Positions 1-9,142 of a stretch of 64,000 nucleotides of DNA are shown piece by piece. The DNA is from Epithemia pelagica. Taxonomy: Eukaryota; Protista; Bacillariophyta. Each line of letters begins with the position of its first letter. Position 1 is the first letter of the stretch. The notes below the pieces were generated by a model that saw nothing but the letters and a program-made list of their open reading frames with translations, had not been told where the DNA came from and did not search any database. The position numbers and the translations under genes are program-made. The DNA lies in contig OX337242.1 of the NCBI GenBank assembly GCA_946965045.2, positions 1,674,001-1,738,000 of the forward strand. Direction: 5' to 3'.

Positions 1-2300
1 AACCGCCTTTCCCACCAAGGAACCGACCACGTCCCCATCTCCACCCTCACCCCCCTGCCCAACAAAAACAAAAACAAGAAAAACAAGCACAAGCCCTCCC
101 CGTCACCCACTGCATTCGACCATTTCAACAAGACCCTTCGCTCTATGTCCAAGCCCACGTCCCCTCCACACCTTCAACGCACCCCCACCCCCACGACCGC
201 CTCCTCCACCGCCAACACGACACCGTCTCCCACCACCACCACGCCGTCTCCCACCACCACGCCAACCGCGACACCCAAGACCCCGTCCGCCCCTACCAAC
301 ACACCCACCACCAAACCCTCCAACCCCAACCCCCCCCCTCCATCACCAACCCCTACAAGACACCCAAACACTCCACGAAACAAGCCACCCCGCCCAGCCT
401 GTACTCCTACCACAACGAGGACAACCCCACCGACACCCCCACCGGCATGATCGTCTGGAACGCCTACGTCCACCACGACCCCGACCCACAACGCGAACAA
501 CGCCTCCCTCCCCTCAGCGGCACCACCATCAAAAACATAATCGAAGCCACGTTAGAGCACCACAAGACCCGAGAAAACATCATCCTCCTCCAAGTCCACG
601 AAGTTACGTACCAAAACACCAAGATCCCCTCCCCACCCCGACGCGGCATCACAAACTCCACGCCACGAGGCCACGTGTCCACATTCCAAGTCAAACTCCG
701 CCCAACAGCCACAGACGACCAATTCGATCCCGAGCTTTTTCACGAACAAGCCCGCAAATTCATTTTACAAAAGTGGAACCACCACCACCACTCCGATTTC
801 ACGCTGGACCCCACCACCGGGATCCGAGACATCCTCCCTCCAGGTACCCAAGAATCCCACCCCACCACCAACGAACGCGCCTCCCAACTCCGCTTGTATG
901 CACCCGCGTGCAACCACACCGACTGTCGTGGTCTCGGCATCCTAGCAGGCCTCCCTCCGAAAACCCTTTTCCACAAACGCGCTTTTCTAGACGTCCTCGC
1001 CGCCATCCGCAAACAACTCCTCCCCTTCCTACCCAACGACCTCCACCTGACCGAGGATTTCAACACCCACATTGGCCTCCGTGACGGTACAATCACGGGC
1101 AGCCAATCTCCCAAGGGCCCACACCTCACCCTACCAACCCTCATCATCTCCGCATCTTCAACCGAGAAATTCGACACCCTCCTCGAAGCCACGGAAACAT
1201 ACACCGCCGCCAACAAACATGACCTCACCTACCACAACACCCCGTTTCACCTACTCCCCTTCCCAGAAAATCCCCTTGAACGCACCGAATACGTCAACAG
1301 CCTCAAGACCATCGAACAAAACTACTCGACATGCACCGTCGTACGCCTCCACAACATAAACCCCCAAGCTACCCCAGACGACTGGGACGCCTTATACCAC
1401 CTCAAGGACTACCGAGGCATCTTCCCACAGTTCACCGCCCACAACCCCTCCCCGGAGAGCCACCACCTTTATCTCCATTGCAACTTGGGAACCATCCATG
1501 TCACCCCCGCCAACATCCCACAAAAACTAGCCGCATTCCCCACCAACCTCCTCCTCACCACCACCGCGACCATCGCCTCCACAACACCACCGACCCCTCC
1601 TCCACACCGACCCTCCTCCATCCAACGCACCAAACGCCTCGCGGCCTTAGCCAACAGGTTTCACCCAATCCACAATTTCGTCGACCTCACCACCCCTCCA
1701 TCTTCCCCGACACCCAACACCGAACCCTTCCATGAACCAGACAACACGGACGAAACACTACAAACTCGCAAACGCCCCGCATCCCCACACGACGCCCCAC
1801 TCCCATCCGTCGACAGCAAACCACCCACCCCGCTCCGCTCCAACCACTTCGCCGCCCTCGCCGAAGAAGATGACGACGACAACCCCACGGATGCTCCCAC
1901 CACTCCTCCCCCCGACTCAAACCTCCTCACACACAACACGAAAAACAACCCCGATGCCAACAACTCCCCAGACGAACACACACGCCCTTCCGACCACCTC
2001 CTACACCTCATCCCCACTGGCCACTTCTCATTTTCACAAGACACAACACACGAATTGGAGCTGTTAGATGACTACATTCGCAGTAACAACCCGACGCTCC
2101 TGACCACCTTCGCCGACCAAGTCACAAATAAACTTACCTCCTTCAACACCACAGATGCCAAAACCATTTGGCAATTCGCCCATGATCTCCTCAATGACCC
2201 AACCACCACCTTCCAGAACGACCCCCCCACCAACGCGATGGACATCGACTCTCACCCCACAAACCAACACCACCCCTCGGGGAACACAGCCCAAAAATGA
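1..2300 (+). CDS. ORF1 of the non-LTR element (partial; probable frameshift in the poly-C run near 330-340)
   Basis: Frame 1 is open from base 1 to 450. The frame of ORF 447..2300 already reads protein-like upstream of its ATG (SITNPYKTPKH...SLYSYHNEDNP), so an indel in the C run probably joins the two. Ends in an ATGA overlap with ORF2. Confidence 0.6.
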   Translation, partial: PPFPPRNRPRPHLHPHPPAQQKQKQEKQAQALPVTHCIRPFQQDPSLYVQAHVPSTPSTHPHPHDRLLHRQHDTVSHHHHAVSHHHANRDTQDPVRPYQHTHHQTLQPQPPPSITNPYKTPKHSTKQATPPSLYSYHNEDNPTDTPTGMIVWNAYVHHDPDPQREQRLPPLSGTTIKNIIEATLEHHKTRENIILLQVHEVTYQNTKIPSPPRRGITNSTPRGHVSTFQVKLRPTATDDQFDPELFHEQARKFILQKWNHHHHSDFTLDPTTGIRDILPPGTQESHPTTNERASQLRLYAPACNHTDCRGLGILAGLPPKTLFHKRAFLDVLAAIRKQLLPFLPNDLHLTEDFNTHIGLRDGTITGSQSPKGPHLTLPTLIISASSTEKFDTLLEATETYTAANKHDLTYHNTPFHLLPFPENPLERTEYVNSLKTIEQNYSTCTVVRLHNINPQATPDDWDALYHLKDYRGIFPQFTAHNPSPESHHLYLHCNLGTIHVTPANIPQKLAAFPTNLLLTTTATIASTTPPTPPPHRPSSIQRTKRLAALANRFHPIHNFVDLTTPPSSPTPNTEPFHEPDNTDETLQTRKRPASPHDAPLPSVDSKPPTPLRSNHFAALAEEDDDDNPTDAPTTPPPDSNLLTHNTKNNPDANNSPDEHTRPSDHLLHLIPTGHFSFSQDTTHELELLDDYIRSNNPTLLTTFADQVTNKLTSFNTTDAKTIWQFAHDLLNDPTTTFQNDPPTNAMDIDSHPTNQHHPSGNTAQK

Positions 2301-4977
2301 CCAGTCGCCCCCAAACATCCAATTCCACCCCCTGCCCCTACCCCTCCTGCTCCTGGCACTCCACCCCCTCAGCCACTCCACGCCAAACAACAGACCAACT
2401 ACGACTCCACCTCCAACAAGCACACCCAGACCAACCAACCACCCACCTTAGTGACCGCTTTTGTCATCAACACCAACTTCACCCGTGTCGACTCTGCAAC
2501 GAGCCCAACGCCATCTACCTCACCCCAAGACACCTCCAAGCCCACGTCAACAAAAGCCACTGTCGCCAGGACACCAACATCAACATTGTTCAACATACAC
2601 TGCGCCACTTGTCCGCCTCCCAAACCCAACAATGGCTCGATCAACTAGCTTTCCTGTACAATCTTGACCTCACACCGCCGCCATTCCGCCGCTCATCCTT
2701 CACCAAGCTAAAACCACAAGCCAAGCGCCTCTCTCTCCAGACCATGAACATGGTCGTAGATTGGACCAACCAAGCCTCCCTCCCCTTCGCCACCACTACC
2801 AGAACAACCCATCACAAGCACAACACAGATAGTGTCCCGTTCTGGAAACTCTTATTTCTCCTCGAAGCACTCCTCCTCGCCCCAATCCAACAAACTCCCC
2901 ATCGAACACACCACAACGCCCTCAAACACCGAGTAGCCCAATTGAAACAAGGAGACCTCATCCTCCTCTACAACACAATCTGGCACCCACCACCTCCCCA
3001 CCTCCACCGCCACAAACGCACAAACAAACACAAACACCAACAACAACCCCACAACACCACACCAACAACACCCACCCCCACATCCATGGCCTTTTTCGCA
3101 CAGCAAGCAGCAGACCTCGGCAACATACGGGCCGCCCACAACCGTCTCACCGCCACCATGCCCATAGCAACACTCACCCCAGAACGAATCAACATCGTCG
3201 CGACCACCCTCTATCCACCCCGCATTGATCCACCCCACAACCTACGCAACCACCAATACACACCAAACCACCACACAACCATCCCCGACAGTGTCTTCGA
3301 ACAAGGACTCCATCGCCTCAGCCAAGGAACCGCCCCGGGCCCCTTCTCCGCCTCCATCGACAGCCTGAGAGCTCTTGGCCTCCAACGCTCCACCACACAT
3401 CCAGCCTCAGACCGACCTTATTTCCACAACTTGAAAAAACTCTTTACCTTTCTCCTCAACAACCAGATTCCATCATCCATCCGGCCATACTTCTCTTCAA
3501 TCCACTTTTTCGCTCTCCACAAGGATATGAACAACCTCAACAAACTCCGGCCCATCGGTATCGGCACTGCACTTCGTCGCGCCGCTGCCACCATCGCCCT
3601 CTCCCTCACCTCCAACGACATCGAACCTCTACTCACACAACAAGGTCAATACGGAATAAACACTAGCGGAGGAGTCGATTTTACCGCCCACCTCACACAA
3701 CAACACATCGACCGATACATCACCAAGGACAACTCCACACCTCCCTCCAGAGCACTCATCCTCCTTGATCTGACAAACATGTTCAACGCATGTTCTCGGT
3801 CGCGATGTCGAGAAATACTCCAACGCAACGACGCCACAAAACCCCTACTCGCCCTCTTCGACCTCCTCTATGCCGCTGATACAAACAACTGGTATCAAGA
3901 CCATGAAGGCAACAACCACACACTCAACCAGCCAGAGGGTTTCAGTCAGGGCTGCCCCTTAAGCCCATTATTCGCATGTCTCGTCCTGTCCGCCCTCACC
4001 GCTACCGTCAACAAAACATTATCAACCCGCGCCCTCGAACGAATCCGCCAACACATCACAGCAGACGATAACCTGGGCGGAGTGAGTCACACCGCCAGTG
4101 TCATGGACGACACGTCCGTTTGTCTCTTGCACGAAGATTTGCTGCCCTTTCTCAACGAATTCGATTCTCTCGGCAAACCTTACGGCATTCACCTCCACAA
4201 AACCAAAACAAAAATCGTGCACAATGGACCCGCACCTCCTCCGACGTGCACCTCGAGCCCACCAACCTTCTCCCCCATCACCCACGCAACATCCGGCCCG
4301 CCGACATCGGCATTGCTTTCCATCCCCCCTTCCCTGACAATCGGTTTCATTACCTTGCCATCGACATCACGATCCCTCCCCCCCATCCTCACTTGCCACC
4401 CACCGAGCCCACAGCAGAGCAACTCCGTCATGGTCAATCGTTCGATACAATCGCAAACGACGCCTCCCAGATTCACCATCACGCCGCTCGCCACAAATTC
4501 ACTCATGACACCACCACCACCGCTCTCATCAACTCAAACGACCTCCTCCTTCTGCCTTTTTCCATCGACCACCTGGGAGGATTGGGTAACTTCGCCCACA
4601 CTCTCTTCTTTGGACAGCCACCTTTCTATTCTCTCTCTTCCTCCAACCCTCCCAACTGGACCACCCCCCAACTCGGACGCTCTGACCGCTGCCTTCCCCA
4701 CCCCGATGGTTTTTTGGCTTTTCAAAATCTTCGCTTTGCTCCTTCCAACCTCATCCACACAGCACAGACCCACACCCCTCCCGGCCCTTCTTCGCGTCCG
4801 ATGACCCTTGCCCACCATGCCAAGCTCACCCTCGGCCATGCTATCACTACCGCGTTGGCCCAACACGTACTCGACGCCCTTTCCACCACCGACACTCATC
4901 TCGCCCAACAACGCAAACTCTGCCGCCTCCAAAAATCTTCTGTGTTCACCGTCTGTCCGGCCCCAACTCTAGTATAG
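2297..4977 (+). pseudogene. ORF2 (zinc fingers-RT-RLE), broken by a deletion/frameshift near 4220
   Basis: RT runs to YGIHLHKTKTKIV (~4218). The RLE motif follows at once in another frame (ORF 4120..4977). No thumb/linker/CCHC region is visible between them. Confidence 0.8.
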
Positions 4978-5687: not shown

Positions 5688-6209
5688 GCCACGAAAGGTG
5701 TGTATGAAAGTTGACCGACGAGTTTCTCCTGAGACGATACCTTCCACCGCCAGAGAAGTACTGCTGCTCAACACTGAATCGAACCCGAAGAAATGGCAAT
5801 TCTCGAAGGATGCTGGTGCTTTGTCCCTCGTCAATTGACTTCTCTTTAGCTGTCCTGGTGCCAATGTCGTCGTTGTCATGGATCCGGATGTGTTGTCTAT
5901 CGAGCTACTCCTACGTACTACTCCTAGCTAGAGGGGAGTAGGTAGGTAGAGTCGGTAGTTTTTACGCGACCCCCGAAGCATTCAATCCGCGACCAATTGA
6001 TGAGACTGCGTCATCACGTCGAATCATCGCATCGGATGTCGTGTTACAATGATCGAGGTGCAGCATCGGACATCGAGGATCGAGAATAGATCCGAAACTG
6101 AGTGGATCGTCGAAATCCATAATCCTTCAAGGAAGAGCGTTATATATGGGCCATTTAAACGAAGAGGGACATACGTGAACAGCTTTGACTCGGTGTGAAG
6201 GAGAGAACA

Positions 6210-7109
6210 ATGCGCTCGTTCACACTCCAGGCAATCGCTTCTCTTTGGTGCCTCTCATGCACGATTTCGAGAGTAGAATCCTTTGGAACAGGTCGTCCGC
6301 CCTTTTTGGCTTCGCGATGCCGAAATGGTCGTAGCCAGCTGGATGTTGGTTCCAATGGTGACAACACTTTGGCAAGCATTAACGATGATTGTGGATGCCC
6401 ATCCCAGGTTGTTGAGTTTGGTGGTGATCCCTCCGCTCGTGCTCAGTCACTGAACCACTATGAAGCGATTCGGAATGTCCCATTTCAACGTCTCTCAGGC
6501 GAAGAAGTGACCATGGACAACCTTATATCATCTGGTTCCCAAGATGGCGTTTCTATTGCCGTCTTTTTGCGCTCCTTGGGATGACCCTTGTGTCAAGAAT
6601 ACCTGTTGCAGTGGAGTCAACGGATGACCGAACTGCAACGCCAAGGTATTCAGCTGACGATCGTCTCGATTGGCCTTCCAGAGAAGGGTCAGGCCTTGGT
6701 ATATCACTTGGGGTTGGAGGACGCATTGGGCAACGATACCCTGTTTGTCGACCCGGAAAATGCGCTGTACAATGCTTTGGATTTGAATCGCGGAGTGCAA
6801 CGCACGTTTTTCACGATTGACACACCCTTTGCCTTTTTGGATCGTTTCACGCGTCGCGATGGAACACGAGAATTGGGTCAAGTGTTGAGTAAATGGTTGA
6901 ATGGCGCCGTCTATATACCACCCAAACAAGAACAGGGGCTGTTGCAAGGCGGTGTCTTTGTCTTTCAACGTTTTCCCAACAAACCCACTCTGACCCTTTT
7001 GGCTCATTACGACCCATCGACGGCGGCACATGCCTCGATTGATCGGGTGATGGACATTGCCAGGACGGCGCAACAAACCACGACCACCACAACCAGTGGG
7101 ATCCCTTAG
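6210..7109 (+). CDS. PRXL2/SelU-like (AhpC-TSA-type) thioredoxin-fold protein; putative selenoprotein with UGA at 6582-6584
   Basis: ORFs 6195..6584 and 6588..7109 are in the same frame. The junction reads VFLRSLG-TGA-PLCQEY (UxxC). Downstream family-like motifs: VSIG, LFVDPENALYNALDL, QGGVFVF. The N-terminus is a signal peptide ending VES-F plus a transit-like stretch. Confidence 0.85.
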
Positions 7110-7721
7110 TGAATAATGACACAATCAACACTGTGACATTGGTTTGGAAACTCAATGGTTGGAATGACGGTGGTTTTCGTATCTCTTTCGATACTATCAA
7201 TACCTGAGACACGACCGTGCCCCAAACCGTGATTGCCAGAGGGATCAGTGTTCAGTTGGATCCGTTTTCCAGTTGTCTTGTTTTCGTGCGAGGGTCCAAA
7301 CTCTTGTAGTGTATTTGGATTGTTCGATGGACCGGCCCATTCCATCGGTTCCCCAGCTTGAATGACGTTGTCAAAATTTCTTCACTTCTGCATCCAGTAA
7401 AGAGTGAGGAAACTTGAGACGACTGAACCAATAGCAGGAATGGATGGAGTGGTGATCGGAGTACATCAAAAGTACCTGCGAGGGATGAAGTGAAGGATAA
7501 CATGAACCAGAGACGATGATACCAATTGGATAATATTTCTCATAGTTTAGCGTAGTTTTGTGTAAGAATACTGGGTATTCTACCTAGAATAGTTTTGTAG
7601 GAATACTGGCGCCACCGCAAAAGATTTCGCCTTGTTATGTTTAGGATCATTCCGTGTCATGTTGCTATCATGCAACTTCACAATCTTGCAACTTGCCTCC
7701 TCGGCTTCATCTCTTCACAGT

Positions 7722-7778
7722 CCAAACCGATGCATCATTGTGGTCAAAGCCAAACCGACGCACCATTGTGAGTCAAAG
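7722..7778. repeat. 28/29-bp imperfect tandem duplication just beyond the 5S terminator
   Basis: CCAAACCGATGCATCATTGTGGTCAAAG followed by CCAAACCGACGCACCATTGTGAGTCAAAG. Confidence 0.85.
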
Positions 7779-7780
7779 CC

Positions 7781-7878
7781 AAAAAGAACAACACCCGGGA
7801 TTCCAACGTGGTCCCCCACTGGTGCTTAACTTCGCTGAGCAGACGGGAAGCGGTGCTGTCATCGTGGTATGGTCATTC
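7781..7878 (-). pseudogene. 5S rRNA gene copy with an internal deletion of roughly 25 nt
   Basis: Minus strand reads GAATGACCATACCACGATGACAGCACCGCTTCCCGTCTGCTCAGCGAAGTTAAGCAC-CAGTGGGGGACCACGTTGGAATCCCGGGTGTTGTTC then TTTTT. Helix I ends pair (GAAUGAC/GUUGUUC). Length is 93 nt versus ~119 expected. Confidence 0.88.
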
Positions 7879-7981
7879 CTGAAACTAGGCGACTTCCTTA
7901 TGTATGTAAACATAGTTTTTATTCTCACAAGATATCCAAGACAACAAAATCTATCTATCGACGACTGGTTTGGATTTGACG

Positions 7982-9142
7982 ATGAAAATGCCTGTAAACA
8001 TGATGCCTCGTTTGTATCTAGGAACCATGACGTTTGGTTGGTCCCAGACATCGTCTCGTGTCGATGAATCGATTGCATTGAAAATGGTCCAACAGTTTGT
8101 CCATCACAACCTACAGGAGGAAGGACAACCACTGCATTACGTTGACACGGCCCGTATCTATGCAGGCGGAAAGACGGAACCAATTGTGGGAAATGTTCTT
8201 TCCAAATGCCTGGACCAACAACACAAGCAAGATTCGTCGAAACCTGTAATGTTTGCAATTGGGACCAAGGCTCATCCATCACAGCCAGGAGGATTATCAA
8301 CAGAAGGCATTGAATCACAATTACAAGCTTCGTTGGAAGCCATGAAAAGTTTGAAAGACGGAGGAAATGAGCAAAATCTTTCTCCTTTGGCAGAGTTTTA
8401 TTTGCATCAACCCGATACCGAACATGACCTTCGTGAAAGTTTGATTTGCATGCATCGGTTGGTCCAACAGGGTCTCATTGAAAAGGTGGGCATGAGCAAT
8501 TACCACGCCAGTGAAATGGAACGAGCCTTTTCAATTTGTCAAGAAGAAAATTTGACACCGCCCACAGTTTATCAGGGATTGTACAATCCCTTGAATCGAA
8601 TGGTTGAAGACGAATTGTTGCCTCTGTTGCACAAACACAATTGTTCCTTTGTGGCCTACAATCCCTTGGCGGCTGGTTTGTTGGCTGGCAAACACACAAG
8701 TTTAGAAATAGTCCAAAAGGGACGATTCAAAAACAATACCAATTACCTACCACGCTTTTATACGAACGCCAATTTCCAAGCTGTCGACCTGATACGAACC
8801 GCCTGTGCTCAATGCCAAGCCGAAGATGGCAAGGCCATGTCCATGGTCGAAGCAACTTATCGTTGGTTGTTGTGTCATTCGGCTTTGACCAAGCACGATG
8901 GAGTGTTGCTGGGTGCTAGCTCGTTGGCGCAACTGGATCAAAACTCGCAAGCCTGTGCGGCAGCACAAAGCGCCGAAGCATTGCCACCCACGGTCTTGGA
9001 CGCCTTTGATCAAGCCTGGGCCATTACCAAAGAAGAGGGTTGTTTTCCGTATTGGAGGAGCTATTCCGCCGATATGCCAAATCGTGAATCCTTGGATCCA
9101 GGTGCCTCTTACAAGGCCTCCAAAACAACCAACACAAAATAA
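7982..9142 (+). CDS. Aldo-keto reductase, AKR7/aflatoxin B1 aldehyde reductase-like
   Basis: LYLGTMTFG, VDTARIYAGG, FYLHQPD, GMSNY, YQGLYNPLNR, AYNPLAAGLLAGK, LLGASS motifs; single exon. Confidence 0.92.
   Translation: MKMPVNMMPRLYLGTMTFGWSQTSSRVDESIALKMVQQFVHHNLQEEGQPLHYVDTARIYAGGKTEPIVGNVLSKCLDQQHKQDSSKPVMFAIGTKAHPSQPGGLSTEGIESQLQASLEAMKSLKDGGNEQNLSPLAEFYLHQPDTEHDLRESLICMHRLVQQGLIEKVGMSNYHASEMERAFSICQEENLTPPTVYQGLYNPLNRMVEDELLPLLHKHNCSFVAYNPLAAGLLAGKHTSLEIVQKGRFKNNTNYLPRFYTNANFQAVDLIRTACAQCQAEDGKAMSMVEATYRWLLCHSALTKHDGVLLGASSLAQLDQNSQACAAAQSAEALPPTVLDAFDQAWAITKEEGCFPYWRSYSADMPNRESLDPGASYKASKTTNTK

Follow-up and report, generated by a model that had tools for sequence, protein, structure and literature searches.

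The nuclear genome of the diatom Epithemia pelagica holds a locus at which two open reading frames, lying in one and the same frame, are separated by a single TGA codon. This raises the question of whether the TGA ends a protein or is read as selenocysteine (Sec) within a longer one. The locus lies in a stretch of 64,000 nucleotides of contig OX337242.1 (positions 1,674,001 to 1,738,000, forward strand; assembly GCA_946965045.2), here called the window, and unless another contig is named all coordinates below are window positions on the plus strand. A first-pass annotation, made from the letters of this stretch, had proposed a hidden selenoprotein of the UxxC redoxin type that carries a plastid-type presequence. 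Judging from comparative sequence data, the diatom gene very likely reads its internal TGA as Sec and so makes a thioredoxin-fold redox enzyme. Taken as a whole, we regard it as highly probable that this is a nuclear diatom selenoprotein of the PRXL2/SelU superfamily, belonging to the branch described by Lobanov et al. in 2007, with Sec insertion directed by a selenocysteine insertion sequence (SECIS) and with import of the product into the plastid.

Translation of the frame gives an intron-less coding sequence at 6210-7109 that is collinear with its orthologues and would encode 299 residues, namely 124 codons, Sec, a further 174 codons and a TAG stop. The upstream part (6210-6581) begins with ATG and comprises 124 sense codons in total, the TGA occupies 6582-6584, and the downstream part runs through 174 sense codons (6585-7106) to the TAG at 7107-7109, all in one frame. 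The residues around the TGA read F-L-R-S-L-G-TGA-P-L-C-Q-E, which places the putative Sec125 at the first position of a U-x-x-C redox motif and Cys128 (6591-6593) at the second, resolving position; this cysteine was found in every U-x-x-C motif that we recovered. The reading of the first-pass annotation, a frame interrupted once and exactly at the first redox position of G-U-P-L-C, is thus exact in both its coordinates and its motif, and the N-terminal hydrophobic stretch that it described as ending in V-E-S before F-G is indeed present as R-V-E-S followed by F-G (residues 21-26). Many orthologues (P0009, P0034, P0067, P0110, P0118 and L002) have an intron between the motifs S-K-W-x-K-G and Y-I-P-P-K which prokaryote-style gene callers read through; the window gene has no intron there.

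Conservation of the TGA speaks for its being read as Sec. A word-based search with the C-terminal piece returned 149 homologues, nearly all of them 130-170 amino acids long and starting just past the position of the TGA, which is the signature of gene callers halting at a conserved stop. The few longer entries show a tryptophan at the site and their DNA reads TGA there. Our scan of metagenome contigs revealed 61 related loci, and in every locus that spans the site the homologous codon is TGA, with V-V-F-L-R-S-L-G on the one side and P-L-C-Q-E on the other, or close variants of these. Distant members with 34-40% identity also keep the TGA, within the motif G-U-F-F-C-W-E-L. Coding conservation extends to both sides of the codon across about 60 related loci, transcripts from cultures included, and given that the TGA and its flanks are kept in every one of these loci that spans the site, the pattern goes far beyond chance. 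Two of the contigs encode proteins labelled as MMETSP (culture transcriptome), one close to a Cylindrotheca closterium protein and the other named Corethron hystrix by UniRef; both retain the in-frame TGA together with a complete N-terminus, so the TGA is not spliced out in these two transcripts. Among the stramenopile-type loci we saw no form with cysteine at the site, and a word-based protein search from the diatom orthologue P0072 likewise returned no cysteine forms. Searching from a distant green-lineage member led to a green-lineage homologue, P0135, in which the motif G-C-P-F-C is aligned to the TGA column. An alignment of orthologues at this codon, which had been suggested as a check together with the first proposal, therefore gives TGA throughout the related loci that span it and cysteine in P0135, the apparent tryptophan entries having TGA in their DNA.

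The protein was assigned to a family by sequence profile and by fold. The part downstream of the TGA matches AhpC-TSA_2 (PF13911), the PRXL2/SelU family, above the family cut-off (39.7 bits against a cut-off of 27, E = 7.3e-10; residues 12-129 of this part, 6618-6971), and a search of the genome with the PF13911 profile recovers the same place. A weak match of the protein to PF00578 remains below its cut-off (15.6 against 26 bits). The fold was assessed on an AlphaFold (AF2) model of the cysteine homologue P0135 in place of the window protein, built from an alignment of 22 homologues that does not include the window sequence. In this model (pLDDT 86, pTM 0.81) a strand at residues 25-33 is followed by Cys36 and Cys39 and by a helix at 37-56, so that the CxxC stands at the helix start and the two cysteines, located where a strand ends and the next helix makes its first turn, take the classical position of the thioredoxin fold. 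Among solved structures the model comes closest to human prostamide/prostaglandin F synthase PRXL2B (9usa; TM 0.75 on the target), with PrxQ/BCP peroxiredoxins next. When the profile of the same 22-sequence alignment was searched against the PDB, PRXL2B was again the top chain, and the TGA column falls on its Cys44. The earlier assignment to SelU/PRXL2 is hence borne out by the PF13911 match and by PRXL2B, which ranks first in the PDB by fold and by sequence alike. A haloacid dehalogenase match of the C-terminal piece, from a first PDB sequence search, was judged spurious and set aside.

The genome itself (60.5 Mb in 23 contigs) carries the machinery for Sec. We identified two tRNA-Sec(TCA) genes (77 and 74.6 bits; L068 and L069, on contigs C5 and C16) and a SepSecS gene on C5 (L071, L072). 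Other selenoprotein genes are present as well. A classical SelU gene on contig 4 (L073, C4:2139081-2142353, minus strand) reads R-R-P-G-[TGA]-V-L-C-R-E and has a compact SECIS, whose helix II counts 10 bp and whose apical loop of 6 nt lacks AA. Further loci on C13, C16 and C2 (L080-L084 and L088) hold a SelM/Sep15-like gene that contains a TGA, and GPx genes that have one in frame and include a tandem pair on C16. Downstream of the SelM-like gene we found the core context G-G-A-A-U-G-A-C-G, which classical SelU and one of the C16 GPx loci also have in that place.

Could the TGA nevertheless be a true stop, whether through pseudogene formation, an assembly error or the presence of two genes, so that no full-length protein is made? 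The one point in favor of this is that gene callers treat the codon in this way, and we consider it extremely improbable in view of the roughly 60 independent loci from distant algae that share this TGA and its conserved flanks, the coding conservation that persists upstream of the codon, the Sec machinery in this genome and the thioredoxin fold, which according to the model would require the strand before the TGA and the redox motif at this codon. Just as improbable is that the TGA is spliced out in this species. Such an arrangement is found in an NCBI gene model of Cylindrotheca closterium (P0077), which drops a 27-residue segment bearing the TGA as an intron. However, a transcript (L077) whose product closely matches P0077 elsewhere keeps both the segment and the TGA, which suggests that the intron of P0077 was a workaround during annotation. 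Removal of the segment would also delete the redox motif, and the window gene is collinear with intron-less transcripts. Sec insertion at this codon, as originally proposed, is strongly supported by the conserved TGA (culture transcripts included), the cysteine homologue, the tRNA-Sec and SepSecS genes, and the SECIS-like elements of the presumed 3' untranslated region (UTR) described below.

Two SECIS-like elements were found downstream of the coding sequence, of which the better candidate, of type II, lies at 7345-7444. Its core is formed by AUGA (7362-7365) plus C7366 and is closed by U7424 and GA (7425-7426). Helix I pairs 7348-7352 with 7437-7441 and 7356-7358 with 7433-7435; the lower part of helix II pairs 7367-7372 with 7418-7423 and is followed by AAAA (7373-7376) and by a long upper stem (approximately 7375-7387 with 7402-7415). 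Folded without constraints, the 101 nt from 7345 to 7445 reach -30.7 kcal/mol (z = -3.0) and give helix I, the core internal loop, a 6-bp lower helix II, a loop of AAAA opposite CUUGA, an upper stem of 10-13 bp and a small hairpin at the apex. The CAAAAUUUC and GAAACUUGA blocks of this element recur in the SECIS elements of pennate orthologues, for instance L005, L015 and L012. A MAFFT alignment of the SECIS elements placed the 5' core well and misplaced the compact window element on the 3' side. In nearly all orthologue 3' UTRs, G-A-A-U-G-A-C precedes a stem whose closure falls exactly on U-G-A. We screened with a strict home-made filter. It asks for AUGA and one unpaired base, then for a run of 5 or more contiguous pairs that closes on N-GA, and for a helix I with no fewer than 4 pairs. 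This filter matched 22 of the 38 non-redundant orthologue 3' UTRs, compared with a mean of 1.6 and a maximum of 4 matches for shuffled UTRs and 1 of 38 for matched coding controls. Between 7110 and 7780 of the window it gave exactly one match, from AUGA 7362-7365 to GA 7425-7426. With the added demands of at least 6 pairs in helix II and of AA within 6-13 nt past the core, both strands of the whole 64-kb window gave 5 matches, or about 0.03 expected per 671 nt. The pair types of the lower stem vary among G-C, A-U and G-U across the orthologue elements, which amounts to only weak covariation evidence because the set was selected for pairing.

The second element, at 7155-7218, is the one that had been put forward initially as the best candidate. 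Its parts are where they were said to be, with AUGAC at 7164-7168, UGAG at 7205-7208, a GUAUC/GAUAC stem at 7179-7183 and 7190-7194, and no unpaired AA, although it proves to be the weaker of the two elements found. The accompanying statement that no canonical SECIS was evident by eye is right only in part, as the better SECIS-like element lies past 7330, where that annotation ended. The core of the 7155-7218 element consists of AUGA (7164-7167) and GA (7206-7207); helix I has 7 bp (7155-7161 with 7212-7218), and helix II has only 4 bp (7169-7172 with 7201-7204), above which come a 6x6 loop and an upper stem of 5 bp. When 7150-7225 is folded, the SECIS form has the lowest energy, -16.8 kcal/mol; the z-scores obtained for the element were +0.8 and -0.4. 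We also observed that the orthologue L009 has two similar SECIS-like copies in tandem in its 3' region (2079-2291), about 150 nt apart.

The N-terminal part of the protein bears the marks of a plastid address. The window protein starts with a short basic segment and a hydrophobic stretch, and its predicted signal peptide (residues 1-24, 6210-6281) ends in V-E-S before Phe25, from which a transit-peptide-like stretch extends (6282-6389) with 4 K+R, 1 D+E and 4 S+T among its first 25 residues. The N-termini of 45 non-redundant orthologues were screened with a hydrophobicity window and a pattern match. The same arrangement of a hydrophobic stretch, a small residue and then an aromatic residue or leucine was found in 42 of the 45; the residue is phenylalanine in 34 of those by a crude first-match rule and in several more by inspection. 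Predicted cleavage sites read V-S-A-F in L002, V-D-A-F in L009, V-A-A-F in L015 and A-S-A-F in L030, next to V-E-S-F in the window protein. Ser, Thr, Arg and Lys abound in the 25 residues past the cleavage site, where acidic residues are few. Diatom plastid proteins carry a bipartite presequence of the ASAFAP type in which Phe at +1 marks stromal import (PMC4329603), and the window protein has such a residue at +1 (Phe, where Trp, Tyr or Leu may also stand), in V-E-S then F. A plastid-type presequence had been claimed at the outset, and the signal peptide followed by Phe is in fact conserved across nearly all diatom-type orthologues; the plastid location that it predicts is probable for the protein. 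Near the predicted mature N-terminus lies a conserved C-G-C motif (Cys61-Gly62-Cys63, in D-C-G-C; 6390-6398), present in 37 of the 45 orthologues and located about 35-45 residues past the predicted cleavage site (orthologue loci L002-L057). One may speculate that D-C-G-C serves as a dithiol for recycling or as a metal-binding site.

The SECIS in use and the final location are the parts of this explanation on which several observations weigh against our preferred reading. In the 7345-7444 element the AA lies 7-9 nt from the core and 48 nt separate it from the 3' GA, which is outside the default SECISearch spacings of 10-13 and 15-39 nt as quoted in PMC2375036, and the orthologue elements are longer still. 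The Rfam model SECIS_1 (RF00031) gave no match at E up to 10 in 6000-8200 and matched nothing useful in 20 orthologue transcripts; this model seems blind to these diatom elements. It is conceivable, if doubtful, that the working SECIS is 7155-7218, alone or in tandem with 7345-7444. The core and flanks of 7155-7218 (GGAAUGACGGUG ... ACCUGA) are nearly the same as those of the SECIS of the classical SelU gene in this genome, which also lacks an apical AA; its helix I is 7 bp long, its SECIS form is the minimum-energy fold of its surroundings, and a contig about 99% identical to the window (L064) has a change at 7217 that turns the U-G pair of helix I into U-A and so preserves the pair. The two copies in L009 would be in keeping with a tandem arrangement. 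However, helix II of 7155-7218 has only the four contiguous pairs before its 6x6 loop, the stability of the element is no better than that of shuffled sequence, it fails the strict filter that 22 of the 38 orthologue UTRs pass, and it lacks the CAAA...UUUC and GAAAC..UUGA blocks common to the orthologue SECIS elements. L064 is too close to the window for its variant to separate the two candidates. On balance, we think it likelier that 7345-7444 is the working SECIS.

As to location, the hydrophobic core (h-region) of the signal peptide includes several Ser, Thr and Gln residues and is only moderately hydrophobic, and the evidence on the presequence consists of a pattern match, so the selenoprotein could be as described and yet reside outside the plastid stroma, in the endoplasmic reticulum (ER) and secretory path or in the periplastidial compartment. 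We regard this as unlikely, since stromal import in diatoms is distinguished by a Phe that directly follows the cleavage site (PMC4329603), and nearly all diatom-type orthologues have one at the predicted site. In the alignment of PMC2375036, moreover, the Thalassiosira pseudonana protein reads S-A-F-A-P, and its homologues from Arabidopsis and rice are extended at the N-terminus by long Ser-rich stretches.

We propose the following mechanism for the selenoprotein. Cytosolic ribosomes would decode the UGA at 6582-6584 as Sec under the direction of a SECIS in the 3' UTR, most likely 7345-7444, which 7155-7218 may assist or replace. Sec125 would stand immediately ahead of the first helix, where a CxxC redoxin has its attacking cysteine. 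From there it could react with its substrate, for which a peroxide, a disulfide or, as for PRXL2B, a lipid-derived endoperoxide are candidates. The selenenyl-sulfide that it would form with Cys128 would then be resolved by a thiol reductant. The signal peptide, the Phe and the transit-like stretch would together address the protein through the ER-derived outer membranes to the stroma of the four-membrane plastid. Going beyond this single gene, we cautiously favor the broader view that the family represents a stromal selenoprotein of the secondary plastid, conserved across diatoms, in which Sec is incorporated during synthesis in the cytosol and the product is then imported, in which the C-G-C motif could recycle the Sec-Cys center, and whose long and sometimes duplicated SECIS elements escape standard models.

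The surroundings of the gene contain several further features. Upstream, two long consecutive ORFs at 447-4804 lie on a strongly C-rich strand (GC skew -0.55 over 1-4000). The second of them contains an RVT_1 reverse transcriptase domain, so that the pair resembles a retroelement close upstream of the selenoprotein gene. Downstream on the same strand, an aldo/keto reductase gene (PF00248, E = 2e-43) occupies 7970-9142. Between the selenoprotein gene and the aldo/keto reductase gene, a 5S rRNA match is found on the minus strand at 7783-7880 (48.3 bits against a cut-off of 38) that misses about 20 nt of the central part of the model and may be a variant or decayed copy.

The prediction that standard gene callers would split this gene is well illustrated by the databases, in which nearly all homologues are fragments of 130-170 amino acids that start after the TGA. 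Among the listed homologues, the NCBI-sourced models from Fistulifera, Nitzschia, Mayamaea and Seminavis begin there. With models that either start after the TGA or skip it, the redox center and the targeting signal are absent from public proteomes. Inventories of the plastid proteome and the selenoproteome of diatoms thus undercount the protein, and plastid-proteome predictions are blind to its presequence since the annotated models lack the N-terminus. Our literature search found no paper that joins 'plastid-targeted' with selenoprotein and diatom. If the reading given here is true, a plastid-addressed Sec redoxin would make the redox protection of the plastid in major marine primary producers depend on the supply of selenium.

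How does the protein compare with known redoxins of the same fold? It resembles SelU and PRXL2A-C in sharing PF13911 and in having U/CxxC at the start of helix 1, with PRXL2B (PDB 9us9, 9usa) as the best match, although the identity between the window family and PRXL2B is below 20%. Jiang et al. 2020 (PMC7539508) count SELENOU among the most widely distributed selenoproteins of algae. Classical SelU, with R-R-P-G-U-x-L-C-R-E and a G-E-G-L-I-x-G-G tail, differs from the window protein, which has a different tail and, unlike classical SelU, a plastid-type presequence and the C-G-C motif. The PrxQ/BCP peroxiredoxins have in common with the window family the core of the thioredoxin fold and a weak match to PF00578, but whereas peroxiredoxins carry T-x-x-C with the reactive cysteine second, the window protein would carry its reactive Sec first in U-x-x-C. 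AhpC_b of Thalassiosira oceanica (PMC7539508) is likewise a diatom UxxC protein with a domain of the AhpC/TSA type. It was reported from a single species with prokaryotic Cys homologues only, whereas the window family is widespread in eukaryotic algae and has eukaryotic Cys forms; this distinction relies on the published description of AhpC_b, and the two may be identical.

The closest known system is the 'thioredoxin-fold selenoprotein' reported by Lobanov et al. in 2007 for Thalassiosira pseudonana, Ostreococcus tauri and O. lucimarinus (PMC2375036, Table 2 and supplement 2), where a 'thioredoxin-fold protein' is listed among the 16 selenoproteins of T. pseudonana. In the 'Trx-fold protein' alignment of supplement 2, the Ostreococcus rows have U at the site and the Arabidopsis and rice rows have Cys. 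The T. pseudonana row, from a different diatom than ours, shows the same landmarks in the same order as the window gene, namely the S-A-F-A-P signal end, D-C-G-C, R-S-F-G-U-P-L-C-Q-E, V-S-I-G, Y-I-P-P-K and A-H-Y-D, and it is on this comparison, made by eye and motif by motif against the printed alignment, that we judge the two to be orthologous. In the SelU alignment from the same 2007 paper, the Chlamydomonas protein has the PPK...QGG...HYD tail of the window family in place of the animal SelU tail. As an orthologue of a family published in 2007, the gene is not of a new kind, and the novelty implied in calling it hidden does not stand: the known picture of selenoprotein families is unchanged. 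The passages of PMC2375036 examined contain nothing on plastid targeting, the C-G-C motif or the long pennate SECIS. What our analysis adds to the known family is modest and comprises the conserved plastid-type presequence, the C-G-C motif and the long or double SECIS that standard models miss.

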